This document shows positions 12,481-40,614 of a stretch of DNA of 40,614 bases, one piece after another (the first letter of the stretch is position 1; every line of letters starts with the position of its first letter). The notes under the pieces were generated by a model. That model saw only the letters and a list, made by a program, of their open reading frames with translations. It was not told the origin of the DNA and searched no databases. The DNA comes from Trichosphaerium sp. ATCC 40318 (Eukaryota > Protista > Tubulinea), in contig JALMLS010000522.1 in assembly GCA_038496445.1 (NCBI GenBank), forward strand, positions 1 to 40,614, read 5' to 3'. The position numbers were made by a program, and so were the translations under genes.

Positions 12481-12632
12481 TTCTAAAAATAAACAAAGTA
12501 ATTATTTTTTAACTTTTTTTCTGAAATCAGATTAATGGGTAAAAAATAATCTTACGCATTTCCCTTCAATATTCTGGGTCTTACAAACTTATGCAAAACT
12601 GTGTGTACTTAACATCAATGACTAAGTTGACT

Positions 12633-17565: not shown

Positions 17566-18806
17566 TTATTTGTTTAACTTGCCATAGCTATAATAGCAAC
17601 GTTTTTCATACTTTCCATTCTCTTGCCACTCTTTGTACTCACCATGCAAAGCACCTTCAATATAAAAACAATGTATCTTAACTTGACCATGCCAATACCA
17701 TTCCTTATACTCCTTATTCAGCTTACCATTTACATAGAAACAACGTAGACGTAATCTACCTGTTTTTTTCCATTCTTTGTACTTTCCATTTAAGCGTCCA
17801 TTTACATAAGAGCACTGTACTAGTAAGACACCGTTGTCATACCACTCTTTGTATTTTCCGTTCAACTCACCTTTGACATAAAAGCATTGCTTGTATACGC
17901 TATCACCATTTTCATAGAACTCCTTGTATTGTCCATCAAGTTCACCGCAATCATAAGAGCAATGTACCTTCAATTTACCAACCCAATGCCATTCCTTGTA
18001 CTCTTTATCCAACAGGCCATCAGAAATAAATGCATGTTTGCGTATTTGTCCATCACACGCCCACTCCCTGTACCATCCGTCCAAAGTGCCATTTTTAGAA
18101 TAAAAGCAATGTTTGTGTAGCACGTTATTATAGTGCCACTCCCTGTACTCATCTCTCAAGCAACCTTTGTTATAAAAGCAGTGAAGTACTAAATCACTGT
18201 CACGCCACTTTTTGTATTCTCCGTTTAATTCACCTTGTGAATAAAAGCAACGTTGGAGCAATGTATCTGTACCGCCCATCCACTTCTTATACTCACCATC
18301 TTTTTTGCCATTTGAGTATATGCATTGTTCAAGTGGTAAACCAGATTCATGCCATTTGTTGTACTCTCAAACCAATCGTCCTTTAACATAAAAACAAATC
18401 AAAAACAGTTTGCCATTGTCGTGCCATTCTTTGTACTCTTTGCTTAACTTGTCTCTGACATACGAGCAATGTACTTTCAATTGTCCGTTGCTAAACCAGT
18501 GCTTGCTCTCGCCATGACGTTTGCCATGTTTCCAAGAACATCTACGGAGAAGCTTCCACATGTTGTTTTGACAATGAAGTTGTTTCATCCACACACCATG
18601 CTTTCTGAGCTTAGAATCAAACCTTGTCGTCATCGCCATGTGTTTTGATAACAATGGCCATTTATAAAAAATGTCAGCGGCTAAATCAGTAATACAAAGG
18701 TGTAGCTCCACTGGGAGGTTGTGCAGGTGACTAAAATCAATGCTGTCCTTATGTATCTACTATCACGTTATAAAAATAAAAGATACACGTGTACTACCTT
18801 TTTCAT
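17566..18806 (-). pseudogene. F-box + MORN-variant repeat gene with an internal in-frame TGA
   Basis: Exon 1 ATG-AAA-AAG (18806-18798), GT-AG intron 18797-18757, then LHNLPVELHLCI (F-box-like) and ~24-aa repeats (GxLxGEYKEWxxNGxLxxxCxYxx). ORFs 18367-18711 and 17566-18279 share a frame, separated by one TGA (18369-18367) at a consensus Gly. Confidence 0.75.
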
Positions 18807-19140: not shown

Positions 19141-19212
19141 AGGCTCCACCCGGAGTCGAACCGGGGTCACATGTACCAAAAACACGTATGATAACCGTTA
19201 CACCATGGAGCC
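19141..19212 (-). tRNA. trnQ: tRNA-Gln(TTG)
   Basis: Reverse complement folds as a cloverleaf: GGCTCCA/TGGAGCC acceptor stem, CGTGT-TT-TTG-GT-ACATG anticodon arm, CCCGG-TTCGACT-CCGGG T arm, discriminator T, TTTT terminator 7 nt downstream. Confidence 0.93.
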
Positions 19213-20021
19213 ATTTGTTGATAATAAAGTGCAGAGACGCAATACCGATCGAAAAAATATGCCTTGCAGAACTACCCAAACCAACGAAATAGTGTAGCCT
19301 TACATATTTTCGCAGTATAACTCCATACTAGTACGTACGAGGGAAAACCAATCACGAGAGTGCTGCAGTTGAACCAAAACAAATAACGCGGTAATTTGTA
19401 AATATTAGTAGCGGTAAGACCGTGATAAGCCATCTGCAAGGAGAATAGGCAAATAACCATCAAATACTACTAAAAACGCTTTGTCGCATTTAGTTCATTC
19501 TAGGCTTACCAGCTGTAAACACGTTTTAGCTTCCTGCTGAGTTTAAGGTGTTTGGCGCGGTGCGTCGGTTTTGTTAAACTACACCCAGTGGTGTCGATAC
19601 GCTCAGAAGTGGATATGTATTCACTAATACCATGAACAATCTATCGTTTAACGGAAACGAGTTTTGGTGGCAAAATCTTTCAACACTGTAGGACATGGCG
19701 CCAGCTGATAACGTGTGTTAGTGCTGGCAGTGTTAGTTTTCCATTGGTACACTGTAAACGAACAAAAATCAAACAATACAAATGGTTTTGGCATCGAAAA
19801 TCTGATTGAATTCAAGCAACTAAAGAAGAGTTAGCAATCTCCCAATACACGCAAGACGTTCTTTGTGATCTCCTTTTATTATCCATGATTGAAAGATATC
19901 AATCAGATGGCCTGGTATCGGACTTTGGTTGAAAAGCGAAAACGACGAAATTACAGTATTTATTTCATTATTTACAAACACAACAAAGTGAACAACAACA
20001 GCGAAAACAACTTCTCTAACA

Positions 20022-20511
20022 ATGAATCAAGCACACCAACGTATCGATAATGCTATAGTAGACTTGTTCGAGAATTTCTCTTCCGAAGCCTATGATAGAT
20101 TGGGCAACGAACTAGAAGCCGAATACGACGTCAATATACCTGCCACAGCTGGAAGGAGTCGCCCTGCTAATCATTCGGCTGAAGCAATACAAGTCATGGA
20201 AGAATATCCTTACAACTCTTTATTTGGAAAAATCAATCATTTGTAATTTTTTGTTTTTTCTTTCTTCTGTTTTAATCTTTATACATCGTTCTCCTTAACT
20301 CTTACTCACTTGGTATACACCTAACATACCTGAGCCATACCCTAAGTATCATGAGAAGCTCGTACTCGCAAGAGACTCTGGTCTAACTGTAGCACAAGTT
20401 AGTACTTGGTTTGCTAACATGCGCGCACGCCGTGGGCACACTAGAACTAAAAAATGCACCGAGGATTCAATAGCAGCCACTCAAACCGAAAGATTAGTCG
20501 ATACTGAATAA
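20022..20511 (+). CDS. TALE homeodomain protein HB1 (B-type); exons 20022-20203 and 20310-20511
   Basis: After removing the AT-AC intron: RPANHSAEAIQVMEDWYTPNIPEPYPKYHEKLVLARDSGLTVAQVSTWFANMRARRGH. PYP loop; collinear with paralogs at 34728-38111. Confidence 0.9.
20204..20309 (+). other. U12-type (minor spliceosome) AT-AC intron, 106 nt
   Basis: 5' site ATATCCTT, branch site TCCTTAAC at 20292-20299, terminal AC at 20308-20309. Removal restores GA|T = Asp and the MEDWYTP motif of the paralogs. Confidence 0.93.
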
Positions 20512-20983
20512 AAACAGTAGCATTGACGTAATTCAATTGTGAGATAGTATTATGTAATGCAAATAAACTGACAGCTTGATATTCGCAACTTGTAGTAATT
20601 TTATTCTTTTTTTGGACTTTTTTTGTACCACTTTTTAAACTATCGCGTTCGGGTTTTAAACAACAGTTTGCCTTAGAATATTATCTAAAGCGTGCCTTCG
20701 TAACCACTAGAAAGCGTAATCTGCTACGTTGATAGAATTCTAATTGATTAGTTCGTAATCAATCTATTGCTCTCAATGGCTCTTATATTCGCCGCTATCA
20801 ATCACCTCACGCTGTACCAACACTCTCAAACTACCACCAGATGATTTCTAAACACGGCCAAAAGCAACTGTAGCTTTGGGAAAATACAACGCCGATAATC
20901 TTTCAGATTCTAATTTTATTCTTGACATACTATAATACATTTTCCAACATTACCAAAAATGGAACGCAGGAAGAAGTCTTAAA

Positions 20984-22646
20984 CTACAACAATGCTAAAT
21001 GAAGCTGTAGGGATACTTCTTTGTTCTTTAACGAGGTAGCTTTACCCAAAGCATCTCGTCCAACAGTTAAAATTTGCTCCCAATCATTAACAACAGCAGA
21101 AGCATGCGTTAAAGTATCGCCTAATGCTTTAGAATCGGTTATAAGCTTCTGTTGATCATCTATTATCCTTGTAGACTTTTGAAGTAGAACACTCGCTTCT
21201 TCTAGCTTTGTTCTAACTTGTGGTTGATCTAGCTTAACATTATCACGAACTCTCATCATTTGAGCGACTTGGTTCACTTTCACGCTCATTTTTTTGTATT
21301 TTTCGAGACAAGCCGTTAATTCCTTTTCAAACGAAAACAAGTTCGTGGCTTGCACAGAAACAATAGAATCACCAAAAGCCTAAACGGAAACTCAGAGCGA
21401 ACAAAAAAAGACAAAAGAGGATAAAAGAAGTGATTGATTTTACAGATCTGTAAATTCCTGCGGTTGTTGGTACGGAAAACTCACCTTTTGTTTGCTGTTT
21501 TCCAGTTCAGCAGATTGTTTTTTGAGCTGTGTACGAAGTTGTGAAACATTCTTTGATACAGCATAAATTTCACCCTAGGAAATCGTGTCAGCGTGCACAT
21601 TAGTTCGTAAGAGTCGTACGAGGGTATTTGCTGTATTCGCTTTTTTGGCGAGTGCCGCATTTTTGTTCATGAGTTGCCATTGAAGGAGCTGGGTTTGTAG
21701 AAGCTCTATACGCTTCATTTTGGTATCCTTAGACTTTTCCATTCCCATTCGGACTCGCTATAAAAAAATTAAACAAACATTTTAAAAACAAGTTGTTCCG
21801 GGCTTCTACACGAACAGAAAAAATTGAAAAAAATGCCACGCTATGCACATAATACTAATGTACTCATAGAAAACTTTTGAGCTTCAAACGATTTGATACA
21901 AACGCGCGAAAAATCGGTAAATAAAAATAGCATTTTAAATCCGAACGTACTGTCGTTAACTTTGAACGTTGCGGTTTGTTTTGTGCTGGTTTGGTAGTAG
22001 TATTGACTCTACGCTTTCTTACAACAGGAGTTTTTGTAAGAAAAGCTCTGGCCTGATTTCTTGCATTTTCACTTGCAAACGCGCTATTTCGTACTGGTTT
22101 GCGCTTCTTCATCGAAGAACGAAGCGTACCAGCTACTACCGGCTTTGGCTTTCGTTTGTGGGCCCAGTCACCTGTATGGTGGCCGTGAGTCGTCGTTCAA
22201 AGCTTTGATTTTAACGTACGTGTTATCATCGTTGCGCGTCTTCCGTTTGGTGCTGGTTGGCGTTTTTGCAGAGCGGCAGGAAGCATTGTAGCTCTTCGTG
22301 TTTGTAGTGGCGGAAGTTGAGTAAGCGGCTTCCTGGTTTTCTTTGTGGTTGATGACGGTTGCATGTAACGTGAAGCAACATGTTTAACTACAATTCAGTG
22401 TGAGCAATTTTACCGTTATTCTTTCTTTACCTCTTCTACGCTTTGCGGTAGATGGCGCTGCAGTGCGTTTTGGTACAGTTTTTCGGTTATACGGCGTTTC
22501 AAGCAGAATATCATCAGTGGGTAGCCGGCGTTGCTTTTTTGCTAACAAATATAAGGTTTAAAGACATAGTTTGTTAGCGATTTACTTGTAGAGCTAAATA
22601 ATCGCTTTTGAACAGATCCAAATGGCGTTTGCGACGACATAGACAT
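20984..22646 (-). CDS. HAUS8: Augmin subunit 8 / QWRF-family microtubule-binding protein, multi-exon
   Basis: Basic low-complexity N-terminus with VASRYMQ (22379-22359, cf. the V/I-x-SRY-L/M motif), KRIELLQTQLLQWQLMN (cf. QWRF-family LLxxxLLQWxxxN), coiled-coil C-terminus. Exon boundaries only partly traced. Confidence 0.7.
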
Positions 22647-23227
22647 GATACGATCAACGCGGGAAACAGCGAGTGGTGTTTTCAAACTAAGTCTGAAATG
22701 TGGTTGGTTCTTCCCTGACGCTAGGTTTTAGTAGCCGATAATACTTTACTGACTCGCTAGTATTGATAGGAAGTATGTAGGGCTAGAACGATTACTAAAA
22801 CAATTTTGCAGAAAAACGTTGTTCCGTTGATGGAATAGTGATTGATAACATTAAATCGCTCTGACCATTAATACACTTTTGTGCTGAACTATTATACGTG
22901 GTGTTTTAGACGCTCCAAATGTAGTGTTGTCCGATTTCACATCTTTCCTCTTTTGGAGTTTGAACAAGCGGAAACAGTTTTTGCTGTACCCCACGAGCAT
23001 CTTGACGCGTGGGTCAATCGTTTGAGAAGTTAGATTGTGCAAAAATCAGTTTTCATCTTGATTGAAAGTTTGTAATTTTGTCTTCGTCTCATTCGAGTCT
23101 ACACACCACAAAACGCCGTCCTAGGAGAAGTTGGGTTTTGCCTAATAAGTACCATTTTCACCCAAATTCGCTTCAAATCATTCATTATATCCAAACAACT
23201 CAACAACAACACCTCCTCTTCAATAAC

Positions 23228-24695
23228 ATGGCCGAACAAAAGAATAGCAGCTCTTCCGTCGATAAACAAGTCATCAATCTTGCAACTGGCGTTCGTGATG
23301 CTCTTATCATCACTCCAAAACGAGAAGTTCCAGCTATTGTACCCCAACTGACGAGAGATGAAGTAACGAACAGATTAAAAGGCCAAATACCAAGCGAAAA
23401 AATGCAACAAAAAGTCTATTGGCTTTTCTCACAGTACGTTTCAGCTCTCACCAGACTCGAAGAAATCGTAGAAGAGAAAGTAGCAGAGACCAAAGCAGTA
23501 CTAGAAGAACCTGAATTGGCTCAACTATTTCCAGAAGCTCTGAAAAAGTTGAAGCTACACCTCGTATCTGCAAAGTTCAATGTTGTTCGCCTTCAGTATC
23601 AAGAACGACTTCGCATAGCCATTAACACCGAAATCAAACGTCAAAGTGTGCTTCCTATTCACGTCAGAAGAATTCCTCTTCGTGCTACTCGTATTCTAAC
23701 TAACTGGCTATTCGTACATGCAGCAGTAAGTTACTATTTTTATTTTTACATTTCTCAATCAATCATGATTTTTCGTCAAACGATATGAACGAACTCTTTT
23801 TTCTGATTTTTCTAACGTTTTACCCTAGAACCCTTACCCAACTGAAGCAGAGAGACAAAAGCTTGGGTTCGTATGTGATTTGACTTGGCAAAGAGTAAAG
23901 ACGTGGTTCAACAACAACAGAAATCGTCGCCGTGCTGACTTACAAGCATGGCTTGTTGCTCGCGGTGTCGTTCCTACTCCAATCGCCCAAAGACGTCACC
24001 GGCCAAGCACACCAGTTCGCGTAGCTAATCCTCCACGTCCAGCTCGTCCTGCACGTATTCGTCCTGTTCCAACTGTAACAGCACCTGTACCATCGGCTGC
24101 TACTGCTATTTCTCCTTCTGCTTCTCTCGATGTTCCTCGCACCAAACCTGCCAGACCTAAGCGTACACCTAAACAAAAGAAAACCAAGAAAGTGAAGAAA
24201 CTGGTTGAAATTAAGAAAGAGAAAAAGTATGTCATTGAAGAAAAGCCTCTAGCGCAAATCAACAAACCTCCTGAACCGCAAGCTTTTTCGGGATTACATC
24301 TCCCAGCGATTAACAACACCATCAATATCGTATATCCAATGACAAGTACGTTTTTCGCTTCAGAGTCTTTAGATAAAGAACTAACATCTACTTTTTTAGC
24401 TACTCTTCCACCGGACACCCTCACGGCACCAGTGCTCGAGTTCCATGATGCTTACATTAAAGAAGAAACTAACATTCTCACCGACGGAATGCCACCAAGT
24501 GATGTAGATGAAGAAATGGTCACGTTCCAAGAACCGCAGGAAATGTTGATGGAGCCTTTCGGATTGTTTTCCATCTCGAGAGGAACCAACATCGATACAG
24601 ATGGTATCAACGAAGCTAATGCAGAGGAGCGTGTGGACAGTTTTGTGAATGGCATGGTAGACAACTTTGTATTTCGTCCAAGTGACCGCAATTAA
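23228..24695 (+). CDS. TALE homeodomain protein HB2 (A-type, PBC-like N-terminal domain); introns 23726-23828 and probably 24346-24399
   Basis: RRIPLRATRILTNWLFVHAA|NPYPTEAERQKLGFVCDLTWQRVKTWFNNNRNRRR, then a basic Pro-rich linker and acidic C-terminus. Confidence 0.92.
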
Positions 24696-25275
24696 TCGAA
24701 AGTTGACGTCCTTCTGATGACGTAGTTTACCTTATGTAACTTCAATACAATAAATCTTATTCTTAAACGTTGTTGTTTGTACCTAACCATCTTATGCGCT
24801 ATAAAACTTTTTATTGGTATCACACATAATTAAAGCGCAATTGTGTATGTTAATCAAGGGAGCCAAGATACTCTATGAGAAGTTTGAGGTAAATGTAATT
24901 TCAAATACTCGCTAGAAAAAAAAACACGATGGTGGTTTTGCATCTTTATAGGAAGTACGGAAATAGCTGTCGTTATAAACAGTATATATATATATCGTCA
25001 CACCAGTTTTATCTTACAGAAGCTTAGATTGAAACAATCAGGAGAGCGAGAGGTTCTAATCTATCACAAAACAGTTGTGAAAAAAAGCATGTGATTGATT
25101 TTTTTTTGTATTTTGCTAGAAGTACTCCAAAAACGTTTAGCGTGTAGAGTACCAACTCTTGGAGTTAACTGAATTAGGAAGAATTTGAGTGGTATATTTT
25201 TACTAGTCAAATTCTATTTATTACAACTCGTCCATCATCAACAACTCAGCAACCAATCAACAACGAACAAAAGAT

Positions 25276-28200
25276 ATGGCTGAAAACAAGATTAATAAGC
25301 AAGTATTCGATCTCTCAAAGCAGTTTTGTAAAGCTGTAACTATCACCCCTCAACGACCAATTCCAGCGCTAATTCCGCAACTATCCAAACAAGAAGTATT
25401 CGCAACGTTTGCTGAGCAACTAACCAGTACAATCCTCGTTCAAAAAGCGACTTGGCTTTTCAATCAGTACCTCAACGCTCTTACAAAACTCGAAGTTATT
25501 GTACAGGATAAGGTTGCAGACGTATCATATGAGCTAGCGAAGCCAGTGATAGCAGATTTGATCCCAGTTGAATTGAAAAAAATGAAACTCCACATTGTTT
25601 CAATCAAGTTTAACTGTGTTCGTCTCTCATACCAAGAAAGACTCTTGGCGGCTATTACAACCGCGATTGAACACCAACGTGGGTTACCTACTGGAGTTAG
25701 GAGAATCCCAGCGAACGCTCATAGAATTCTTACGAATTGGCTCTTTGTACATGCTGCAGTACGTATTTTGTACAATAAACCTACCTGTACTGACTTTTCT
25801 CATAGAATCCTTACCCAACCGAAGCAGAAAGACAAAAACTCGCATTTGTATGTGACTTGACATGGGCGAAAGTAAAAACGTGGTTCAACAACAACAGGAA
25901 TCGCCGTCGTGAGGACCTTCAAGCATGGCTTATTGCTCGTGGTGTTACTGCTCCAATCGCTCAAAGACGTCGCGGGCCAAACCCACCAGTTCGCGCAGCT
26001 AATCCACCACGTCCAGTTCGTGCGCCAAGTGCTAGCAACCGCAGAAGAAGAAATCCTGCCACCAATCGTGTTTGTGCTCCTGAACCTGTACCTGTTCGTA
26101 CAACTGCTCAAACCGTAATTCCGTCCATTACTGTTCCCGCACGCACCAAACCTGTGACCGCGAAGCGAACACCTAAACAACGGAAGATAAAAAAGGAGAA
26201 AAAAGTGCAAATGATCAAAAAAGAAAAAAAGACGCTTCATAGAACTAGAAGACGTACTCCACCTGCTAGAACTAGAGGCAATCCACCGAGTGTTACAAAC
26301 AATACCAAGCATAAGGTCATAGAGTCTCCTGTTCCAGTTATCAGTAACGCTGTCAACGCCTTCCCTTTGACAAGTACGTCTGTTTCTAAAGATATTTTGT
26401 CTAATTTATTTTGTAGCTTCCTTTCCTGATATTCTCATGGCACCAGTACTCCCGTTCGATGATTCATTCACCTATGAAGGAACCAATGTACTTACCACTG
26501 GAATGATTCAAACTGACATGGATGAACACATGGGTTACACGACTTCAACTATGTTCCAAAGTCCTCCAGCAGCGATGTTTAAACCTATCGGAGAATTGTC
26601 TGTACCAAGAAACGGTACACATAAGGCCCTTAGCACTGGCTGTGATGAACCTAAGGTTGAAAAGCGTATAGAAACCGGAGAGACAGAAAAATCCCCGGAA
26701 AATAGCGAAAATTCCCAAGGTCGGGATTTTTCGTTGTTTGAGTATTGGTTCTCCCCTAGTTTCAATGCAGTTGGTTATACCAGTAGCCAAGTTGCCAGCG
26801 CTAGTACATGAGTTCAGCAGTGAGCACACAGCGTTCAATGGTCTCTGGTTGTGCAAAAAAAAAGGTAAAAAAGTGCAGGGATTACGATGTGGCGGAGGCA
26901 TCAAAAAATGCAAAGGAGTGCTAGGAGGAAGCAAGTTTTCAAATCCACGGTTTGCCGGTTTAGATGCAATACAGCATTTTAAAATACCTGCCGATAGAAA
27001 TGGTTCACGAGGTAAACTCTGTTCAGAAGTTTTAGAGTGCAAAAGCTGTGATAATTGTACTTGCGAACTAACTTGGGTGATTTACCTCACGGATTTAACT
27101 ACAGCGCACGTCACCTTGAATGGGAATCACAATACTTCCTTTAAAGCCAAACAAAATATATCAAAAGAATATTACGTATACTTAGTGCGCACTCTCGAAA
27201 GTATACTCTCACTAAATAAACGCTAGGTACGTAAACAATTTAATTTAGAGGATGAATTTGGAACAACGAGGAGATATGGACGTGCATCACCAGGGCAGTT
27301 TTTAAACAACACTAGAGTACAAATCATACGGCAACTACAACAAAACAAATTAATTCAAAACCCAACCCTTAAACAGTGGATCCTACCAACACGTCAAGTT
27401 AGTGATTGGCAGCGAGAGAATCGTGCAATAAAACCGTAAGTATCTTTATTGTTTTATTAACATTTACCCTTTAACTAGGACAACAAGCATTATCGATGAA
27501 ATACGAACTACTCTAAATGACCCAACTATCAAACCATACATTTTGTATCCAAGAATTGCAGCGCACATGCCAACCAATGAAAAAAGCAACTTTGTAGCAG
27601 TGTTCACCACTCCAAAATCATTGAAGCTTTTACAACAACATGGCAGTGACATCATTGGACTTGATAGCGTGTATAAATTTAACGCTTATTCATTTCCTAT
27701 CTGGGGAATCGTATGTGAAGAGCCAAAAACCAAGCGAGGTTTACTTTGTGCATTGGCTATTGCATCAAGCAGCAAAGCTGAAAACATAGAGTGCTTTTTA
27801 TCAGCAATAAAAGCAAAATTGAACAGTACGTAAATAAAGGAACTTTATTGCTAACACGTTCATTGTTATAGCTAAAAATCGCGTTTGGAACCCGTACGTT
27901 ATGATTGACAAAGATAATGCAGAACAAGCAGCCCTTGTTAGTGTCGGGTTACGTTATTTGTTATGTACCTTTCATTATCGCCGCACAATAGGCCAATATG
28001 TGCGAACTACGTTCAAAAGCGACTCTGACTCAAAACTATAGTGCGTGTACCTTTCTATGTACTCCAATAACACTGGTGTAGTCAAGAAATAACAGACCAG
28101 CTCCGTCTACTTGAGCGTGCTAGATCAGACGAAAACTTGACCACGCTTGAACAAAGTTTTAAAGAATGGTGCAAAGCAAGGACAACTGTTTGGAAAGAAA

Positions 28201-30715
28201 AGAAAGATGTAATTTCAGGTACCAAAGGGAAAAAAGAAACTTTAGAACCAGCGAATGAATTATACTTGTATTTCAAGCGAAATTGGTACGATTGCTCGTT
28301 TTCACAACACAACTGACTTTTTAGGTTTTCAGAGAGATGGCGAAGCGCTTGGACAGATTTTGGGCGCCCTAATCGCAAAGGACTGTATAACACTAACAAC
28401 AAGGTTGAAACACAGTGGAAACAAATAATGACAGTTTATGGTGCGTACCTCTTGATTTTTTCTCTCTTTTCGCTGATTTGTTTGAGGTTTTAAACAACAC
28501 CGCTATACCATTGCCCGTTGTATGAAAGTGTTCCCAGCCATTTTAGATAACCATTGGGAAACCTACAATGAAATACAGTTAACAGGTGGCTCGCACATTA
28601 AAAAAACAAAAGCAAAGTATACCGACGAGAAAAGATATTCAAACGCTCAAGAGCTTGCAGCAAATGTACGCCGTTTTAATTCTAAAAGATGCAAAACTTA
28701 TTTTTTTTGTAGGGTCATGTAGTAGCTATTGATTTGTCAGATCACGCACACAGGGTATATGACTGTCTATCACAAGCCACACCAAATAAATGGTACTCGA
28801 TTGAAGTACCAGATGGCATCTGTAACTGTCCTTACTACCAAAGCTATGGTACAGAGTGTAAACACATTATCGCTGTTCAGCTATTTGAGGAAAACTTTAC
28901 AGCTGAAACAATCTTGGAAGAGAATGAACTCTACAACTTAACCAGTAAGCAAAGCTTTTTTGTAATGCTCCTAACTATTGTTACAGACAACATACCTGGT
29001 ATACCTGAGCTTGATAAAGCAACAGCTAGAAGCAATGACGCTGAGAAACGTAAACGAGGTAAAGGTAACAGAAGAGGTAAAAAAGGTAAAGGTCAAACTT
29101 TTGAACCAAACGCACCTCCATTGCCGTCATGCCATGCTGCTCCATCACTGCACACAAATCAATCTCTGCTACCGTCTCCTTCACTCTCACCACCTTCATC
29201 GCCTCTCTCCTCCATGAAATCTGCATCAAACTCTCCTCTGCTATTTACATTTTCTCCAGTGGTTCGGTCGGATACATTACCTCCATCATCTCCTGTTTCA
29301 TTTCCTTCAAGTGCTGCTTCATCACCAATGGCATCACTTACATTACAACCAGCATCTCCCATGGCATTGTCAGCAAGCGCAGCCTCCTCACCACCATTAT
29401 CTCCAATGTCTTTATCATTTCTTTCTAACGATTTTCAACCAATTGAAGGTTTACCAAGTCCAACTCAAACGTTTGCACTTTCTCCAACTCCTAATGTAGT
29501 GGTGCCTAGTGTTCTGCCACCTGCAGTGCTACCTTGTGACTTACCAACTGTTTCAGCTTTTCGCGTAACTTGGCAAGGTTAGTACTTTTTTTTGATTTAA
29601 CAATTTGTTTTTGTTTTACTTACCTGTATTAGAACATGGCTTTCAACGTTCTGAAACTGAATTATACAAAGCCATAGCCAACGGTGATGTCAAACCAACA
29701 CGAACCCGTAAACTTACACGCAAAGCGCAAATGTATTTCAAACAATAAAATGAAATAATTTGTTTTTTTGTCTCAAACAAACTTGACGTGCCAAACATGT
29801 AACAGCATACCATACAATTTAAGTTGGGGGTATCAACAGTAAAAGTGTTACACATGCAATCATGTTTAAACACGGAAAAAGGACCAAACAAAAAAAGGTA
29901 GTTTTTGTGTTAGTGTCAAGTCTTAAATCTAGGAGAGTACAATACACTAAAAATGCGTGCTAATAAGCGGAACTTTGTATTTCAAGAAAAGCGATTTTTG
30001 TGCCAACCCCAAATTCTTAAACAACTGCCAAAGCTCTCGGTATGTAATGTAAATATGAATTGCGTACTCTTTCCTGTTTGGTAAGAGGCACAGTGCCGCA
30101 CCTGTCAAAAAAAAAAATTGGGAAAACAGCAAAAAGGCGGGGAAACAAAGAAGGTCTAGAACATGTTCTTAACATATTTTAGGCCAAGCAAAGACCAAGC
30201 GACAAAACCAAACAAAAAAAAATTTGGAAAAACCAGTTTTTTTTTAAAACTATGGTCAGAGGCGTTTTCTACGCACAGAGATAGCGTAGGCATTTAAAAA
30301 AAAAAAAATTGAGTTTGAAAAATATGACAAATTGTCATTTTTAGCTTGCCTCTTTTTTAACAACATAATTTGTGATATTCCCAATATTCCCCTTTGATGC
30401 TCGTAATTTACATAAAAACGTGTACGTTACTCGTTAAACAAAATTACGGCCAACTACCATTGGGAGTTAAATGTACGCTACCGTTAATAACTATATATTA
30501 CAGCAGCGCTTGATAATACGCTCAAAACAATGGAATAATAGCGCATTTCAGACTTGCGTGGACTAATTACAGTACAGTTAACTGCCGACAAAACTACAAG
30601 CAATTAACGAAAAATCCCAGGGTGTGGATTTTTCGTTATTTTCCAGGGATTTTTCTGTCCCTCCATAGAAACCTGTGTGAAAGACGTTGTTGATCTGTTC
30701 GTGTTCCGTACCTGA
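25276..30715 (+). CDS. TALE homeodomain protein HB3 (A-type); last exon interrupted by a MULE. Exons 25276-25758, 25806-26373, 26417-26676, orphan tail 30674-30715
   Basis: ILTNWLFVHAA|NPYPTEAERQKLAFVCDLTWAKVKTWFNNNRNRRR. Excising the element gives EKRIETCVKDVVDLFVFRT*, matching HB2's EERVDSFVNGMVDNFVFRP. With the insertion present the frame ends at 26811. Confidence 0.9.
26677..30664 (+). mobile_element. Mutator/MULE DNA transposon, 3988 bp
   Basis: Imperfect 59-bp TIRs (26677-26735 and 30606-30664; 49/59 identical by hand count), perfect 9-bp TSD ATAGAAACC (26668-26676 and 30665-30673), internal transposase. Confidence 0.96.
26765..29748 (+). CDS. MULE transposase with SWIM zinc finger, about 9 introns
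   Basis: DDE triad contexts IIGLDSVYKFN, VMIDKD and NTNNKVE; Mutator CxxH motif LCTFH; SWIM CNCPYYQSYGTECKHIIAV; N-terminal Cys/His cluster; Ser/Pro-rich tail. Exons join in frame. Confidence 0.9.
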
Positions 30716-31328
30716 AGTTAACGAGCGAACTCACCTCTATCTCTGTAACTGATAAATAAAATAGCAGAAAGCTGTTCAACAAGTTGGTTTCTGTTGTACA
30801 TCGCTAGAGTCTTATCAACGCCAAAATGGCTAGCTTATAGAGTAAGCCTACATTAATTCATGGTTCTTATTTATTCCTTCTACAAAAGCACCCGGTATGC
30901 ACTCTTAGCGCATAGATATACGTTTTTTACTTTTTCTAACGAAGCTCGGAACTTCTCCATAATGGGAGAGCTTTTCAGCTTGTTGAGCATACCTTACGCA
31001 TAAGTAGAGCTAAGAATCAGTGCAAATCTCCTTTAAAGCCTGTTTTAAGTGTTTTCAAACCTTTCCGTTTTTGGAGAATACTTCAGCTTTAAACTGGATT
31101 ATAAAACGTAGCGAGAAGAACGGCAATGATAGAACAGATCAAGTATTAAAAAAACAAAAACAGAATCGAGGTAAACAACTATGCGCAGAATCAATACGAT
31201 CTAGTACTACAACAGCATTGCAAGCGAATGATGTATTTTGTACGCATGTGTTCCTAATTTGGTCTGTTTTTAAGTTATAAAACAGAATTGCGCCAACAAC
31301 TAAACAACAACACCTCCTCTTCAATAAT

Positions 31329-32373
31329 ATGGCCGAACAAAAGGATAACAGCTCTTCCGTCGATAAACAAGTCATCAATCTTGCAAAAGGCGTTCGTGAT
31401 GCTCTTGTTATCACTCAAAAACGCGATGCTCCAGCTATTGTACCTCAGCTTAACAAGGATGACTTTATGTTATCACTTTCTAATCAACTAAAGAGCGAAA
31501 TACTAGTAGAAAAAGTAACTTGGCTTTTCTCACAGTACGTTTCAGCTCTCGCCAAACTCGAAGCAATCGTAGAAGAGAAACTTGAAGAGACCAAAGCAGT
31601 TCTGGAAGAACCTGAATTAGCTCAACTATTTCCACAAAGTTTGAAACTTCTAAAGTTAAACCTCGTATCTGCAAAGTTCAATGTTGTTCGCATTCAGTAT
31701 CAAGAACGACTTCTCGCAGCAGCTACCAAAGTAATTAAACGTCAACAAAATCTTCCTATTGATAACAGTAGAAAGCTTCCGAAGCGTGCTATTCGTATTC
31801 TAACAAACTGGCTATTCGTACACGCAGCAGTAAGTGGAGGTTTTTTATTAATTTATTAGTCATTTTTTTAACATTTTGCAGAATCCTTACCCAACCGAAG
31901 CAGAGAGACAAAAACTCGCATTTGTATGTGACTTGACATGGGGTAAAGTATTAAGGTGGTTCAACAACAACAGGAATCGTCGTCGTGCTGACTTACAAGC
32001 ATGGCTTGAAGCTCGTAAACAAGAAGAGTCTTCTACTGATATTGAACCGAAACCTACGGATGATCCTATGGAGACTGAAGCCATTCCTGCAATAGTACAG
32101 AAAGAGGTAGTACAAGCGATTGTTAAAGGAGAACATCTTCATGCTATCGTTAAAGAAGAAGCCCTTCATGCCATCGTTAAAGAAGAATACGATATAAACG
32201 ATATGTTTCCAGAACTAGATATGTACTATGATCCTTTCGGACAGGTTACAATGTCAAATGATTCTAACATTAATACTGATGGCATAAACCAAACGAACGC
32301 TGTAGAACGCATTGACGATTTCATGGACAAAATAACATACGCATTTGTCTTAGAAAACAGTAAATTCGAATAG
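31329..32373 (+). CDS. TALE homeodomain protein HB4 (A-type); intron 31830-31881
   Basis: RKLPKRAIRILTNWLFVHAA|NPYPTEAERQKLAFVCDLTWGKVLRWFNNNRNRRR. N-terminus nearly identical to HB2; shorter acidic tail. Confidence 0.92.
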
Positions 32374-32967
32374 ATTTGTCAGTACAATAAAAAAAAATTC
32401 AATCACTAGTTTTTTATTTAGTTTACGCGAGAATTAAACCATTACGCGCAGTAATAGCGTAGTAGCTCTTTTTTATCAAAATATAAATTGTAGTTTAAAC
32501 GGCAAATTTGAAAAACAATTCAGGCTTTCTGTGCACTCCGTGAGATAGCAGGCTTTGCTGATAGTCTCACTCACAACAGCAACCAAGCGTACAATGCAAC
32601 ATTTTGGTAGTCTTGACAAACTGAGCGCTAGGTTGAATTGAAAAGCGAAGAATTGTTGTATTAGAACATCATCAGCGCGTTTGTATTAAGTAATGATTGA
32701 TACCATTTGAACGAGTGGAAGAAAACAAGCTTGTCTGGAATATAACTTTTCTGAACTTCCTCGTTTTGGAAAAGATACACAAAGTATGAAAATAGACAAC
32801 TCGCTGTATAAGGTTAAGGTGCTAAAAACAATAGCAAACAATAGATTAGTCCCGTTGAACTCAAATAGATTTTCTTTAGTTCTTGCGTAGGTCCTAATTT
32901 GGGTGATTAAGTTTCAAATTTATCTTGTTTTTAACAGAATTTCCACTCGCTATCAAGATTGAATACT

Positions 32968-34387
32968 ATGTCTTCAGTTGATCAAGAAGTAATCAATCTT
33001 GCTCACCAAACTCGTAATGCACTTGTTATTACTAAAAAACGCGATGTTCCATCGATTGTACCAAGGCTAACAAGAAATGAAGTCATGGATAAACTGGAAG
33101 GTCAACTAACGAGTGAACTACTTGTAGAGAAAGTCTCTTGGCTTTACGCTCAATATATTTCAGCACTAAAAAAGCTTGAAGTAATTGTTGCAAACAAAGT
33201 TAAAGAGACAAAAGACGTACTAGAAGAACCTGAAATGGCTAATTTGTTCCCCGAAGAACTAAAAGACCTTAAATTACACCTTATATCTGTAAAGTTTAAC
33301 GTTGTTCGCGATAATTACCAGGAACGGCTTCGCAACGCCATTACCAGGGAATTAAAACGCCAAAGCGAGGTTCCTGAGGCAACAAAAAGAATTCCAAAGC
33401 GTGCAACACGCATACTTACAAACTGGCTCTTCAAAAACGCGGCAGTACGTTTTAATACCTTATCGTAGACTAACGTCAAATAGAATCCTTACCCAACTGA
33501 AGCGGATATACATAAACTTGGATTTGTATGTGACATGACATGGGCCAAAATTAAGACATGGTTCAACAACAACCGTAATCGCCGCCGTGGAGACTTACAA
33601 AAATGGCTTGTCGATCGTGGTATTATTCCTACTCCTAAAACATCAAAAGCTCGTCGCAAAAAGAACCTTTCCGGTATCCCAGCTGGTAGTGCGAAGCCTC
33701 TGAGAGCTAAACGTAGACCTAAATTAAAAGCCAAGAAAGTGCAAAAAAAGCCAGTAGAAAAGGAAGTTGTTGTTGTTGAACAACCGCCTCCTCAGTTCTT
33801 TCCTGCCACTCAACCATCTCCTGAACCTCAACCTATTCCTATCGATCTCACCAACGAACTTTCTCAACCTCAGGCCGTTCCTATGGATGTAACCAACGAA
33901 CAATCTCAAACTATATTATTCCCTGTCGTACAAAGCCAACCTCCTCAACCTCAATTTACTCCAGCAAATGAAGATCAATTTGATATCCTTTCAATTCCAC
34001 CTTTACCAATGCTCGTGGATGATATTCATCTTGACGGTGCATTGCCAAGTACGTTTTTACGCTTACAAACGGAATGATCTTGTTCTGATAGTTTTTTTAG
34101 CTTCTTATTTTGAAGATACGTTACCACTGCCACTGTTCGGTGTTGACGATATACACAAAAACGAACCTGACTTCTTCAACAACGAGATGTCCGGTTTTGA
34201 TATGGATGAAGACATGGGATACAGTAACATGCCTACTGCATTCCAAGATTCGCCAGACATGATGTTCAATGCTATGGGAGAATTAACTTTACCAAACTTG
34301 TACACTGATGATTTCAACAATAGCCGTATCCCTGAAAAAACAGCAGATCCTTTCTTCTATCATACCATGGATGCTGAATATATTTAG
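32968..34387 (+). CDS. TALE homeodomain protein HB5 (A-type); introns 33445-33483 and 34049-34100
   Basis: KRIPKRATRILTNWLFKNAA|NPYPTEADIHKLGFVCDMTWAKIKTWFNNNRNRRR; P/Q-rich and acidic C-terminus. Confidence 0.92.
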
Positions 34388-34727
34388 TCGTATTAATGTC
34401 CACAACCTATGTAGCTTTCGAATAAACTATAAATATATATTTCATTGAGTTTCTCTTTTTGTATGGTTCACTTTATGTACAAATAAGAATGTTAAACACA
34501 ATCTTCGCAGCGTTACACATATTTTCTTTGCGCTTCGGTAATTTAAAAGATGTGCTTTACGTGTTATAGAATACCATATGGTTGACAACTTTTTCTTTTT
34601 CCTCATGCCAAAAAAAGATTGCGAAAAGAAAACAAGGTGGTTTATTATGAAGTACAAGGCTAAGATTACAATTGAATATCTTTTGTTTAGCTCTAGACAG
34701 TAATTTGCGATTGCTACCAAATTGGTT

Positions 34728-35261
34728 CTATTTCTCGGTCTTCACACGTTTGAGCGCTCTTTTGTTTCTTTCGGCTTCCATACGGCGTTTATTGTCCTTC
34801 TTGGTATGTCCACGGCGACGACGGGTATTTGTGAACCACACCTTAACTTGAGCAACGCGCAGACCAGCTATTTCAGCGATTTCAATACATTGACCATGAT
34901 TTGGATATGGTAGTGGAATGTGAGGAGTGTACCAATCTTCCATGACTTGAATGGCTCTTGAAACATGGTTTGCTGGACGATTGTGACCATTCGTGTGTGG
35001 AATGGCAGTGTTGTATGTGTTTTCGTAGTGAGTGAGCATTGCATTAATATTGTTGAGGAGACCTTGCTGTTGATCTCTTGCTATCTCTTGCAACAGGTTG
35101 CTAACAATGTTGTCACGTTTTTCAACAATGCTAAGGCACATTTTTGTGAATTTTTCAACGATAGCTGAATCGACGTGTGAGATATCAGGAGCGAATCCAA
35201 TTACTTTATCGCCGTTGATCTCTACTAGCTTCTTGTATGCTTCAAATGCCATGTTGTTCAT
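34728..35261 (-). CDS. TALE homeodomain protein HB6 (B-type), intronless
   Basis: RPANHVSRAIQVMEDWYTPHIPLPYPNHGQCIEIAEIAGLRVAQVKVWFTNTRRRRGH. Confidence 0.93.
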   Translation of the reverse strand: MNNMAFEAYKKLVEINGDKVIGFAPDISHVDSAIVEKFTKMCLSIVEKRDNIVSNLLQEIARDQQQGLLNNINAMLTHYENTYNTAIPHTNGHNRPANHVSRAIQVMEDWYTPHIPLPYPNHGQCIEIAEIAGLRVAQVKVWFTNTRRRRGHTKKDNKRRMEAERNKRALKRVKTEK

Positions 35262-35419
35262 GTTGATGATGAGGTGTTGTTGTACTATTGCGATAATAAT
35301 GATTGTTTGAGTGTAAAATTTTAGACAACCAAATTCTAATTCACTGTTGATTGGTTTGCTTCTATTTTTACTTATTTTCCATAAAAAGCGCTAAATATAT
35401 AATCAATCTAAACGTTTGT

Positions 35420-35690
35420 ACCTTTTGTTGGAATAGCATCTTTGCGTGTTTTCGTATTAAGTGATCATTACATTGATATGGTTGAGAGGTCCTTGCTCTT
35501 GGTCTGTTGTTATTTCTTCCAAAAGGTTGCCAACAATCTCGTCACGTTTTTCAACAAAGTTGAGACACATGCTATTGAACTCGTCAACAATAGCTGGATT
35601 GAGGTGCGAAACATCAGGAGAATTTCCAATTACTTTGTCACTGTTGATTTCTAGAACCTTCTTATACGCTTCGAATGCCTTCGTGATGAG
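35420..35690 (-). pseudogene. HB7: truncated B-type copy, N-terminal domain only, no homeodomain
   Basis: KAFEAYKKVLEINSDKVIGNSPDVSHLNPAIVDEF...LNHINVMIT*YENT aligns with the HB6/HB8 N-termini. No ATG at the homologous start, premature TAA at 35459-35457, homology ends shortly after. Confidence 0.8.
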
Positions 35691-36063
35691 TTGGAAATTT
35701 GAGCGCCAAATATTTTTTTTACTACCAAATTCAGTAACCAATAAAGAAAGCCATAGATTCGTTGCCAAAAACCAAACATTGGAGAAAAGAAAGATACATA
35801 GCTAAATCAGCTATACCGCAATGATTCTCCGTTACAGTAGTTGATTGTTTCAGCTGGTATCGTTATGTACAATTAAATGGAATTTATGCTGGGTACAAGG
35901 AAGGGACTTTCTCAACGGAAATGGTCTTGTGGCTATTGATATTTATAGTCGTTCTGGACTTACTCATCAACGTATACAAAAAAAAAGAGGGACTCAGGGT
36001 ATTGACAACTAAGGATCGTAGTTTATTGTTATTAATTTAACTCTATAGAAAAGTACATCGGTT

Positions 36064-36597
36064 CTATTGTTCAGTTTTTACACGCTTCGCTTTGCTTTCT
36101 TCTTTTATTGAAGCCAATTTGCGTTTGTTTTCCTTGTGGGTATGTCCACGGCGACGGCGGGCGTTGATAAACCACACTCTGACTTGAGTAACACGTAGTC
36201 CAGCTTGCCTAGCGATTTGAATGTACTGATGATGATCTGGATATGGCTGTGGAATGCGAGGAGTGTACCAATCTTCCATGACTTGAATAGCATCTGCTGA
36301 ATGATTCGCTGGACGATTGTGACCATTTGTGTCAGGTATTGCAACATTGTAGGTGGTTTCGTAGTGGTGAATCATCCCTTGAAGGTCCTTGAGAGGTGAC
36401 TGTTCTTGATCGGTTGTTATCTCTTGCAAAAGGTTGGCAACAATCTTGTCACGTTTTTCAACAAAGTTGAGACATATTTTAGTGAACTCTTCAACGAGAG
36501 CTGAAGCGACGTGTGAGATATCAGGAGCGAATCCAATTACTTTATCGCCGTTGATTTCTACTATCTTCTTGTATGCTTCAAATGCCATGTTGTTCAT
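36064..36597 (-). CDS. TALE homeodomain protein HB8 (B-type), intronless
   Basis: Start MNNMAF by homology with HB6; IQVMEDWYTPRIPQPYPDHHQYIQIARQAGLRVTQVRVWFINARRRRGH. Confidence 0.93.
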   Translation of the reverse strand: MNNMAFEAYKKIVEINGDKVIGFAPDISHVASALVEEFTKICLNFVEKRDKIVANLLQEITTDQEQSPLKDLQGMIHHYETTYNVAIPDTNGHNRPANHSADAIQVMEDWYTPRIPQPYPDHHQYIQIARQAGLRVTQVRVWFINARRRRGHTHKENKRKLASIKEESKAKRVKTEQ

Positions 36598-37571
36598 GTT
36601 GATGATGAGGTGTTGTTGTTGTACTATTGCGATAAAAATGATCGTTTGAGTGTAAAATTTTAGACAACCAAATTCTAATTCAGTGTTGATTGGTTTGCTT
36701 CTATTTTTATATATTTTCCTTTCAATTTGATGGACGAATACTATCAATCTATACACATGATTGATACACTTGTTTGGATCAACAGAGGTGAGAGGTTCGA
36801 AAAAATCAATCATCACTGAACAAAAACAAGCTTCTTTCTTGAGCAGAAACTGAGCTTTCTAGCGTTTACTACCAAGTACTACGTTGATTGTGTTCTTGGT
36901 TTCGTAGTTTAAAGTTTAGCCTAACTCTAACAAATGTTCATTCTAGACAATAACAACATTGTGGCATAGTTCGTAACGCTCAGAAAGTTCACATAGGAAC
37001 TCTATCAATCTGAATAAAACAAAATCTCAAACCAATCACCGCTGATCGAAAACAGCTTTCACTCACAAACTGGAAAACGGAATAATATCAATCTATCGTC
37101 GACCTGATAAGCAGCAATTTTTTGTTTACAGAAACATGCAAAGCGACTGGTACAAAAGAGTCGTAGGTCGAAAAACCGCGTCGGGGGAACAAAATGACTT
37201 CATTTTACACAAAGATAACCTCTTTTAGTCGAAAACAACAAAAAACAGCTTTAGGAGCTCGGTTTACAGTATTGACGGGAAATATGTAACAACAGAACAG
37301 TTTGTAAGGTAATGAGAGCAATCTTGCGTTCTTGCAATTCCAAAACGAGCATGTTTTGAATTTCGGCGTTTTACATCCTTACCCGACCTGGGAAGGATAT
37401 CTACAAGCTACCAGAGGTAGCCGAGAATACATACCGTACATTAAACACTCTCTAATGTACCGAAAAGAGAAATAAAAAAAGAACTCGAGAAAATACAAAT
37501 TAGGCGATTTTTAGTTACAAAATATTCGTTTTTATTAATTTAACAAGGGTTGTAATAGATAAAAGAATACA

Positions 37572-38111
37572 TTATTCGTCTGTATCATTCTTTGCTCGTT
37601 TTGCATTTCTTTTTGCTTTTTCAGCTTCCATTTTACGTTTGAGGTCCTTCCTTGTATGTCCACGGCGACTGCGTGTGTTAGAGAACCATACTCTTACTTG
37701 AGGAATAGATAGCTGCGCATTTTCAGCGATTTCGACTATTTGGTGGCGATCTGGATAAGGTAGTGGAAGATGTAGGGTGTACCAAGATTCCATTACTTGA
37801 ATTGAGGCACGCGAATGAGCCGCTGGGCGAACGTTACCTTTTTCGACAGGTATAGCTGGGTTATAAGTGTTTTCATACTGGCGGAGCATCCCGTTAATGT
37901 CGTTTAGCGGTGATTGTTCTTGGTCTCTTGCTATTTCTTCCAGAAGGTTGGCAACACTTTGTTCACGTTTTTCTACCAAGTCGAGGCAGGAGAAAACGTA
38001 TTTCTCAATGGTGGCTGGGTCAATGTGTGATATATCAGGTGCATCACCAATTACTTTATCACCGTTGATTTCTACTAGTTGCTTGTATGCTTCGAATGCC
38101 GTGGTGTCCAT
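37572..38111 (-). CDS. TALE homeodomain protein HB9 (B-type), intronless
   Basis: Start MDTTAF by homology; IQVMESWYTLHLPLPYPDRHQIVEIAENAQLSIPQVRVWFSNTRSRRGH. Confidence 0.93.
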   Translation of the reverse strand: MDTTAFEAYKQLVEINGDKVIGDAPDISHIDPATIEKYVFSCLDLVEKREQSVANLLEEIARDQEQSPLNDINGMLRQYENTYNPAIPVEKGNVRPAAHSRASIQVMESWYTLHLPLPYPDRHQIVEIAENAQLSIPQVRVWFSNTRSRRGHTRKDLKRKMEAEKAKRNAKRAKNDTDE

Positions 38112-39110
38112 GTTGATGAGGTGTGGTTGTAGTGTGATTGAAATTATATTGATATTTTTTGAGTGTAAAAAGTTGAGGTGGCCAAATTCTCGTTCACTGT
38201 TGATTGGTTCTGATAGATTTTTCGCCAATCGAGTGACACTATTATGAGCATACACTGTAAACAACGAAATAGCATTGCGGCTGTACAGGTATAGCCAGTT
38301 TAATCTCAAACTGGAACAGCTTTCGGACAAATATTAAATTCACAAAACTAACAATGAGCTAACAGCGTGCAAACATACGCTCATGTAGTTTTTAGAAAAC
38401 ATCGAGAGCGATTTATGAGATATCAATCAAACTCAATCAGCACTGAATTTGTTCCTTCTAATCGCTCACTTCGTCGTATCAATCTACGAGTTCACATTTT
38501 GAATATACTTTTAAAAAAAGCGCTATCTTTTTTAAAACCAATCTATAGTACAAAATACGCGTTGGTGGATAATATACGAACGTTCTACAGTATATATAAG
38601 CACATTGAATTCGTTGCAAAAAAAAAATACAACCCACGCAGTAATGTTTATGTCTGGGTCCTGTACTAGCAAGCTACGAATATTTTCGTTCGTGGGAACC
38701 TTTTTGGGAGTTGTTTCCACGCCAATTCCAAAACTAGCAAGTTCCGATTTCTGCATTTTACGTCCTTTCCGTACGTGAACAGAATTTAACAACAAAGCTA
38801 CCGTTCGATAAACAGGTTTCCGGCGCAAAATGCATCATACGGAATTTTTTTATTTTAAAACATCGATACAGACACAGTTTACTGTCGAGGTGTACTTCTA
38901 GTAGCATACAAAGCATTAATAAGAGTAAACTGTTAGATGGTTACAATTGCAGAGGCGTTAAATAAAACTAAAACAAAATCGCTAAACGAGTGCATCTACG
39001 CCTAGGGATACCATAACACAAAACAAAACAAGTATTATAAATCAATTATTTAATTGTCATTACATTTTTTTTGTACAATACCGCTGGCGATGCGCCATAG
39101 GCACAAGAGC

Positions 39111-39632
39111 TTACTTCTTCTCTTGTTTGGTTTTTTGACGCTTGGCAGCTTCTTTCGCTGCTTCTTCCTCGCGTTTACGCTTAGCTCTTGCTTCCTTGAT
39201 ACGAGTACGCCTGTTCTGAAACCACAAGCTTACTTGCCCTTCCTTTAAACCGCACTCAATAGCGATAATCTTCTTTTCTTGAGCTGTAATATAAGTTTTC
39301 TTGTTGTACCATTCCATTAGATAGTCAACAGTATCTTGTGGATGATTTCTTGGACGTCTTCTGCGAGGTGGAGGAGGTAGGTTTTCACCAGTTGCCTCAT
39401 TGTCGAATTGCTCATACAACACGTCGTCTTGGCCGAGTCCAAGGTTGGCTATCATACTTTTGATCATGTGTTCTGATTCGGCATCGATGGCAGATTGTTC
39501 GTGGATAGATAGTGCGCAAACTTGTTGCACTTCAAGGCTGTTAATGTCACCCAAGGATTCTGCGTCAAATTCAACGGTTTCGGATGTATTCATTGTAACC
39601 ATTTTCTCTATCATTGTAGCTGTTGTTGTCAT
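39111..39632 (-). CDS. Non-TALE (60-aa, Q50) homeodomain protein HB10, intronless
   Basis: RRRPRNHPQDTVDYLMEWYNKKTYITAQEKKIIAIECGLKEGQVSLWFQNRRTR; no three-residue loop extension. Start taken at MTTTAT; an upstream in-frame ATG exists at 39722. Confidence 0.9.
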   Translation of the reverse strand: MTTTATMIEKMVTMNTSETVEFDAESLGDINSLEVQQVCALSIHEQSAIDAESEHMIKSMIANLGLGQDDVLYEQFDNEATGENLPPPPRRRRPRNHPQDTVDYLMEWYNKKTYITAQEKKIIAIECGLKEGQVSLWFQNRRTRIKEARAKRKREEEAAKEAAKRQKTKQEKK

Positions 39633-40232
39633 TTTGTTGAGAGTTGTTGTTTCGACTGTTTGAGTTGTGAATAATGAATTCTTCGAGCAGAAATTTGGCA
39701 AAAATTGGCGTAGGTTCTTCATGTAATGTACTAGAATTTACTATCAATCATACCCTTTTATAGCCTAAATCAATGAAAAATAGGGCATGTGAATAGGAGG
39801 AAAGTGTGTATCCTTTCGGAACGTGGAAGGTAAAAACCAATATTTGAATTTTCCTTGATAGAAAAGTATATCACTCAGAAAGTTGGCCGCTCCACATCAA
39901 CCCAAAATAACTCTATACGATAATATTAACGTGTTTACAGGCATTCAGTAAGTGTGACCACGCTCAATAAACGTAGAAGACAGCAAAACCACAAGAATTG
40001 ACAAATAAATTCTGGGAGATATCAAAACGGCTGAGCTTTGTAAACACGCCGACCTTAAAGAACTACGCACATACACATTTTACACCATTGTTTGAGGCGG
40101 TTTAAAATAAAACCAAATAAACTCAATTTCGCAAAACAAAGCTTGCATTGTACACAATACATAAAATGAGTGTCAAGAAAATGGTTTTTATTAAACTTAC
40201 ACTTTTCCAAATATAGCAAGATTAGAACACTA

Positions 40233-40614
40233 TCAAGTTATCAATCTGTATTCTCTCGTTAATCTAACACATCTAAACCTAACGTAAAAATCATCTTTTG
40301 GTACTTTTCGGAACTTGCAGTGGAAGTACTCCACTTTTGGAACAATGTTTTGTACAGCTGTTCAAAAGCGTCAATTACTTCTTATTGGTTGTTTTAGCGT
40401 TTAGTACGTTGTTTTTCATCTTTTGCTTGTTTTTGTATGCGCCGTTTACGCCTTGCCTTACGGTTGTTAAACCAAGCATTAACCTGCTTGAAGGTAGTCC
40501 TGGTTGCTTCAGCAAGCTGCATCTTTTCTGATTTATTCGGCATTGGATGAGGCAAATGAGCTGTAAACCAATCTTCTAGCACTTTGGTAACTTCAGGAGG
40601 AAACGCACTACCTC
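40233..40614 (-). CDS. Divergent TALE homeodomain protein HB11, 5' end beyond window
   Basis: GSAFPPEVTKVLEDWFTAHLPHPMPNKSEKMQLAEATRTTFKQVNAWFNNRKARR. Ends at 40394 if unspliced, or at 40233 if a GTACTA..AACAG intron is removed. Confidence 0.85.

Follow-up and report, generated by a model that had tools for sequence, protein, structure and literature searches.

A cluster of ten homeobox genes with enriched GATTGAT sites in the amoeba Trichosphaerium sp. ATCC 40318

Homeobox genes are densely clustered in one stretch of the genome of Trichosphaerium sp. ATCC 40318 (Amoebozoa), namely positions 1 to 40,614 of contig JALMLS010000522.1 (assembly GCA_038496445.1), which is the whole DNA analyzed here and is called the window. 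Its right half carries ten homeodomain genes in 20.6 kb: four TALE genes of an A type (A1-A4), four of a B type (B0-B3), one TALE gene of a third kind (C1), and one typical, non-TALE homeobox gene (N1). Our preferred explanation, which we hold to be rather likely, is that of a lineage-specific cluster of functional homeobox genes, derived from old tandem duplications and regulating itself through sites of the consensus WGATTGATW. The TALE proteins of the cluster would bind the WGATTGATW sites that crowd their own promoters, and the genes would regulate themselves and each other. The binding may be done by A homodimers or A-B heterodimers, as in the PBX-MEIS and KNOX-BELL pairs, and such a feedback circuit could set the cell state or the life-cycle stage of this polymorphic, multinucleate amoeba.

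Composition, integrity and age of the cluster

A six-frame motif scan of the whole window located ten recognition-helix motifs, all of them at 20.3-40.6 kb, and 0 in the left half. Every homeodomain (10 of 10) scores above the curated cut-off of the Pfam models Homeobox_KN and/or Homeodomain, with Homeobox_KN above its cut-off for all nine TALE genes. Counting residues back from W48, the three-residue TALE insertion between helix 1 and helix 2, which usually ends in PYP and makes a 63-residue homeodomain, is present in A1-A4, B0-B3 and C1, and is missing from N1. The interval 20022-40614 holds nine TALE homeodomains and one typical homeodomain with Q50, together with one B-type pseudogene fragment devoid of a homeodomain. 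Ten homeodomains per 20.6 kb far exceed what chance would give. A first-pass annotation made from the sequence had proposed ten homeodomain genes and one fragment in this interval, and the six-frame scan, Pfam and tblastn agree with it; the fragment was recovered, by tblastn of all pieces against the window, as a B-type N-terminal copy lacking the homeodomain.

The gene order is B0 and A1-A4 on the plus strand, followed by the convergent minus-strand run of B1, the fragment, B2, B3, N1 and C1. The six-frame scan thereby bears out the arrangement that had been claimed, with a B gene leftmost and four A genes converging on a minus-strand run, and the single non-TALE gene expected in that run is N1, whose homeodomain has 60 residues. 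The division into A and B types likewise stands, because homeodomain identity is 52-85% within families and 18-38% between them.

Nine of the genes have complete open frames once spliced, with introns of the GT-AG or AT-AC kind. W48, F49, N51 and R53 are all kept in nine of the ten homeodomains, C1 having K at position 53. The A genes have in common a phase-0 GT-AG intron of 39-103 nt, which falls within the TALE insertion, after WLFVHAA and before NPYP. Both A2 and A4 are interrupted once more, by a short GT-AG intron, where A1 has continuous coding sequence, and this distribution points to intron gain or loss among tandem paralogues. An apparent frameshift at 26374-26416 of A2 was also considered and ruled out, since the shift is this second intron, seen in A4 as well. 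B0 has a predicted U12-type AT-AC intron of 106 nt (20204-20309), which starts with the U12-type 5' splice site ATATCCTT and carries the branch site TCCTTAAC 10 nt before the terminal AC. Its removal restores the frame VMED|WYTP; the intron splits the homeodomain at codon 18 and has no counterpart in B1-B3. The identity of B0 is given by Homeobox_KN (E 5.9e-12) and by tblastn matches to B1-B3. Both the GC content of the window (36-42%) and its short introns agree with the published Trichosphaerium draft genome, for which a GC content of 37.7% and a mean intron of 75 bp were reported in a paper that leaves homeobox genes unmentioned (PMC10521059).

The copies are old and constrained. Synonymous divergence (dS) is 0.4-1.8 for A pairs and 0.6-1.3 for B pairs, with ratios of nonsynonymous to synonymous divergence (dN/dS) of 0.17-0.53 and 0.2-0.3, respectively. 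The N-terminal domain of the B proteins evolves at about the rate of their homeodomain. The A N-terminal domain is faster than the homeodomain (dN 0.21-0.45 versus 0.12-0.20), and in the youngest A pair, A1-A3, dN/dS is 0.70 for the N-terminus and 0.21 for the homeodomain. Judged by these substitution rates, the A and B genes are old tandem duplicates under purifying selection, not dead copies, and they are taken to be functional because dN/dS stays at 0.17-0.53 across duplicates of such age (dS 0.4-1.8).

GATTGAT sites and upstream elements

The non-coding DNA of the cluster is rich in one short site. The core GATTGAT (consensus WGATTGATW) occurs 23 times in the window against 6.1 expected, spanning 19898-40246. 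All 23 copies lie in the cluster half, where 3.1 are expected, and 0 lie in the left 19.8 kb, where 2.8 are expected. TGATTGAT/ATCAATCA is the classical PBX site, and GATTGAT is its core. The longer form TGATTGAT is present in 12 copies against 2.06 expected, all within 19898-39750, and none of 100 shuffles reached 12. An unbiased count of 8-mers led to the same site, as GATTGAT is part of each of the three non-trivial 8-mers that are most frequent in the cluster half, and each of these 8-mers occurs 0 times in the left half. The flanks differ between copies, so the copies are independent and not one repeated element.

The position of the sites suggests what they may serve. Nineteen of the 23 copies are in non-coding cluster DNA, and most sites precede the start codons of B0, A1, A2, A4, B1, B2 (with five sites), B3 (with two) and N1 by 110-490 bp. 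Because the copies are mostly upstream of the start codons of the cluster genes, auto- or cross-regulation of these genes is suggested, and the cluster is probably self-wired.

The B genes also share a 55-nt element, 54-111 nt upstream of their ATGs, which is conserved better than the coding sequence. Over 129 nt, the upstream regions of B1 (35252-35380) and B2 (36591-36719) are 90% identical, compared with 75-82% for the coding sequence. This could reflect constraint on a promoter or leader or, alternatively, gene conversion acting locally.

Family identity, known systems and alternative explanations

Outside the homeodomain, relatives of the A and B families were absent from about 15 billion public proteins, with one borderline exception for A. 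Neither B1 alone nor the alignment of the B proteins found a match in the word-indexed protein collection, and scans of metagenomes with the B and A alignments returned no relatives. In an exact look-up, 0 of eight window open reading frames (ORFs) were present in the public collection, and missing matches are therefore uninformative on expression. The exception came from an exhaustive comparison of a profile of the A N-terminal exon with 1.84 billion representatives, which gave a single match (E 3.2e-4), to a protein that has a TALE homeodomain C-terminal to a Pfam PBC domain (E 2.4e-22). Since that profile contained helix 1 of the homeodomain, the comparison was repeated without the homeodomain. 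Against 16 PBC-TALE proteins, hhalign then aligned the A N-termini over 77 columns (E 6.6e-4, probability 27%), in register, with KFNVVR..YQERL opposite KFDYVR..LRQNV and with the alignment stopping, in the A and the PBC proteins alike, a few residues short of the homeodomain. None of 300 column-shuffled controls reached the observed score of 28.8 (null 13.1 ± 2.8).

PBC-B is known to mediate the dimerisation of TALE proteins. The A proteins consist of an N-terminal helical domain, a TALE homeodomain whose residue 50 is N, a basic linker and an acidic tail, and the AlphaFold2 model of the N-terminus (pLDDT 69) has two long helices. The A genes are possibly a very diverged PBC-like family, with a dimerisation domain of the PBC-B type at the N-terminus. 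Among solved structures, the B homeodomain is nearest to MEIS1/2, merely 2-3 bits ahead of PBX, and that of C1 is likewise nearest to MEIS1/2, narrowly ahead of PBX. Residue 50 is I in B2, T in B1, S in B3 and A in B0. Pfam searches of the B N-termini at E up to 10 gave no match to KNOX1, KNOX2 or Meis_PKNOX_N, and the AlphaFold2 model of B1 is of low confidence (pLDDT 60). In our reading, B would be a private small TALE family, combining a MEIS-like homeodomain with an N-terminal domain of its own.

The three-residue insertion is common to the cluster TALE proteins, to animal PBC (PBX/Extradenticle) and MEIS/PREP, and to the PBC and MEIS proteins of Acanthamoeba (PMC4053784, PMC4901127, PMC6219170). 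Other features recall these classes as well: directly before its homeodomain, A has a helical domain that shows a weak, in-register alignment to the C-terminal half of PBC-B; the homeodomain of B is nearest to MEIS, with WFINARRR in B2; and the enriched site, TGATTGAT, is that of PBX. There are also differences: the Pfam PBC, KNOX and Meis_PKNOX_N models fail to match the cluster proteins, position 50 holds N in the A proteins and one of T, I, S and A in the B proteins, instead of G or I throughout, the A proteins are without PBC-A, and the B proteins have just 127-179 residues. Where animals and Acanthamoeba have single genes, the cluster has four copies per family. On these features, neither A nor B can be placed in the PBC or MEIS class of animals.

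Several findings weigh against the self-regulating cluster and the PBC-like character of A. The reversed A query scores 26.5 in hhalign against 28.8 for the true one, and the similarity to PBC-B is weak because this control scores almost as high; the periodicity of amphipathic helices may account for much of the signal. Pfam found no PBC match in the A N-termini at E up to 10, a feature search with B1 returned generic TALE clusters alone and one with the A N-terminus came back empty, and a fold search with the A N-terminal model gave generic helical matches alone (TM ≤0.44). The A-type recognition helix is WFNNNR, with N at residue 50, not the G of PBC proteins. As for the sites, A3 has no GATTGAT site upstream, the MEIS site TGACAG is not enriched in the window, nor are composite PBX-MEIS and PBX-HOX sites, and the many GATTGAT sites could be there for some unrelated factor. 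A transposon has damaged A2 at its 3' end.

That damage, together with the B pseudogene fragment and the lack of homologues among public proteins, is what would be expected of a decaying or selfish array, whose largely non-functional homeobox copies were spread by unequal crossing-over or transposons. Such an origin is very improbable in view of nine genes whose frames are complete and open and whose splice sites are correct, the dN/dS well under 1 at saturating dS, and the retention of W48, F49, N51 and R53 in nine homeodomains, with K53 in C1.

We also find improbable a locus for mating type or self-recognition like those of basidiomycetes, in which A-B heterodimers would be active across haplotypes, the paralogues would supply multiple specificities, and polymorphism would be maintained. 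The cluster does resemble the basidiomycete HD1/HD2 loci (Coprinopsis A, Ustilago b) in having several linked homeobox paralogues of TALE and typical classes, here two TALE families tightly linked to a typical homeobox gene. The life cycle of Trichosphaerium is complex and possibly sexual (PMC10521059), A may carry a PBC-B-like dimerisation domain, and the B homeodomain is nearest to MEIS, the B2 helix WFINARRR being of the MEIS/KNOX type. The faster A N-terminus, most evident in A1-A3, is the sole feature that fits a specificity domain; the B N-termini, in contrast, are not diversified but conserved as much as the homeodomain, and no MEINOX/KNOX domain was detectable in B with Pfam at E up to 10. 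The layout is unlike that of basidiomycete homeodomain loci because there is no divergently transcribed pair of TALE and typical genes: all A genes are on one strand, and B1-B3, N1 and C1 are on the other. Only one typical homeobox gene is present, and the paralogues are moderately conserved, being 50-85% identical rather than hypervariable, with strongly conserved B N-termini.

A switch from the haploid to the diploid phase (gamont/schizont), comparable to KNOX/BELL, GSM1/GSP1 or ORO/SAM and distinct from a mating-type locus, would have A and B expressed in different gametes or stages and active solely as a heterodimer after fusion. The PBC-like character of A and the MEIS-like character of B would suit it, and TALE dyads are regarded as an ancestral feature of eukaryotes, with both PBC and MEIS genes carried by Amoebozoa (PMC6219170, PMC4901127). 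We nevertheless regard it as rather unlikely, given that known switch genes are single-copy and unlinked, that a binary switch needs no four-by-four paralogy, and that Pfam detects no MEINOX domain in B. It also seems doubtful that the cluster is one of several polymorphic arrays with a combinatorial A-B (PBC-like/MEIS-like) code that specifies mating type or controls the gamont-schizont switch, wired to its own promoters via PBX-type sites. If true, this partner code would be the first homeodomain locus of the TALE-dyad type for mating or the life cycle to be found in Amoebozoa, the mat system of Dictyostelium apart.

Spiralian TALE genes and mammalian Rhox/Obox are lineage-specific tandem homeobox clusters. 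Like these, and like the Wariai-like expansion of Acanthamoeba, the Trichosphaerium cluster represents recent-to-old homeobox duplication within one lineage. Acanthamoeba has 25 homeobox genes, including one PBC, one MEIS and the Wariai-like expansion, and Dictyostelium has 13 (PMC4053784, PMC4901127); lineage-specific homeobox expansion in Amoebozoa is a known kind of event. The KNOX/BEL expansion of Caulerpa is also a lineage-bound duplication in a multinucleate single cell, but its genes are at distant loci (PMC6476727), and those of the present cluster, ten in number, share 20 kb. In contrast to all of these examples, the present cluster comprises two families without detectable relatives and dense PBX-type sites. 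Ten homeobox genes in 20 kb are unusual outside animals and fungal mating loci. A limited literature search found no described amoebozoan homeobox cluster, which does not by itself prove novelty. For the self-regulating cluster that we favour, the interest is that its proteins and its DNA site are candidates with which to ask whether, in a single-celled organism with many nuclei and a complex life cycle, an ancestral TALE dyad expanded into a network that regulates itself.

Feature coordinates, the transposon in A2 and neighbouring genes

The coordinates of the cluster genes and associated elements are collected in Table 1.

Table 1. Homeobox genes and associated elements in the window (aa, amino acids; "Pfam", homeodomain matched by Pfam).
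Feature	Coordinates	Strand	Description
B0	20022-20511	+	Short B-type TALE, 127 aa; exon 1 20022-20203, exon 2 20310-20508 plus stop
A1	23228-24695	+	A-type TALE, 454 aa; two exons; GT-AG intron 23726-23828 between WLFVHAA and NPYP
A2	25276-26811	+	A-type TALE; three exons; introns 25759-25805 and 26374-26416; Pfam
Mutator-like DNA transposon	26677-30664		About 4.0 kb; terminal inverted repeats and target-site duplication
A3	31329-32373	+	A-type TALE, 330 aa; two exons; intron 31830-31881; Pfam
A4	32968-34387	+	A-type TALE, 442 aa; three exons; introns 33445-33483 and 34049-34100; Pfam
B1	34728-35261	-	B-type TALE, 177 aa, intronless; Pfam
55-nt upstream element of B genes	35315-35369	-	Copies at 36654-36708 (98%) and 38168-38222 (75%); repeat families D7 and D8
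B-type pseudogene fragment	35445-35684	-	N-terminal domain alone; no ATG, in-frame stop, no homeodomain
B2	36064-36597	-	B-type TALE, 177 aa, intronless; recognition helix WFINARRR; Pfam
B3	37572-38111	-	B-type TALE, 179 aa, intronless; Pfam
N1	39111-39632	-	Typical non-TALE 60-residue homeodomain; WFQNRR (Q50); Pfam Homeodomain E 1.4e-11
C1	40397-40614	-	Third TALE kind (PMP instead of PYP); Pfam; gene runs off the right window end

The B-type fragment is 60-67% identical to residues 3-82 of B1-B3 by tblastn, and as repeat family D1 it is 78% identical to B1. For N1, an alternative upstream ATG is present at 39722, and the nearest solved homeodomains are those of engrailed and DUX4.

The transposon in A2 has terminal inverted repeats of 64 nt (26677-26740 and 30601-30664), which are 81% complementary, and it is flanked by the 9-bp target-site duplication ATAGAAACC, read directly at 26668-26676 and 30665-30673. 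Long terminal inverted repeats and a 9-bp duplication, the two features by which a Mutator-like element (MULE) is recognized, are thus both present. Among the transposon ORFs scanned for a MULE transposase domain, a SWIM zinc finger alone turned up (ORF 28734-29582, exactly at the Pfam cut-off), with the interior modelled in part. The 3' end of A2 now runs into the transposon, and its original last 14 or so codons resume in frame after 30673. The displaced C-terminus resembles the C-termini of A1 and A3, and this motif has been replaced by transposon sequence.

Between B0 and A1, two minus-strand ORFs of 123 and 82 amino acids (20984-22112), one coiled-coil-like and one basic, have no family match and may be an unrelated gene within the cluster. 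Just left of the cluster is a tRNA-Gln (UUG) at 19141-19212 on the minus strand, the sole Rfam/ARAGORN match in the window. Farther left, two neighbouring minus-strand ORFs at 17566-18711 carry MORN-variant repeats (the first with Pfam MORN_2, E 2.3e-9). The region 6586-15555 holds at least four leucine-rich-repeat genes, whose products have GVHTI-type repeats and, probably, an F-box at the N-terminus; these genes appear to be members of one large family. The exons of a divergent tubulin-like gene, separated by short introns, lie at 5622-6266 (Pfam Tubulin_C, E 5.3e-9).

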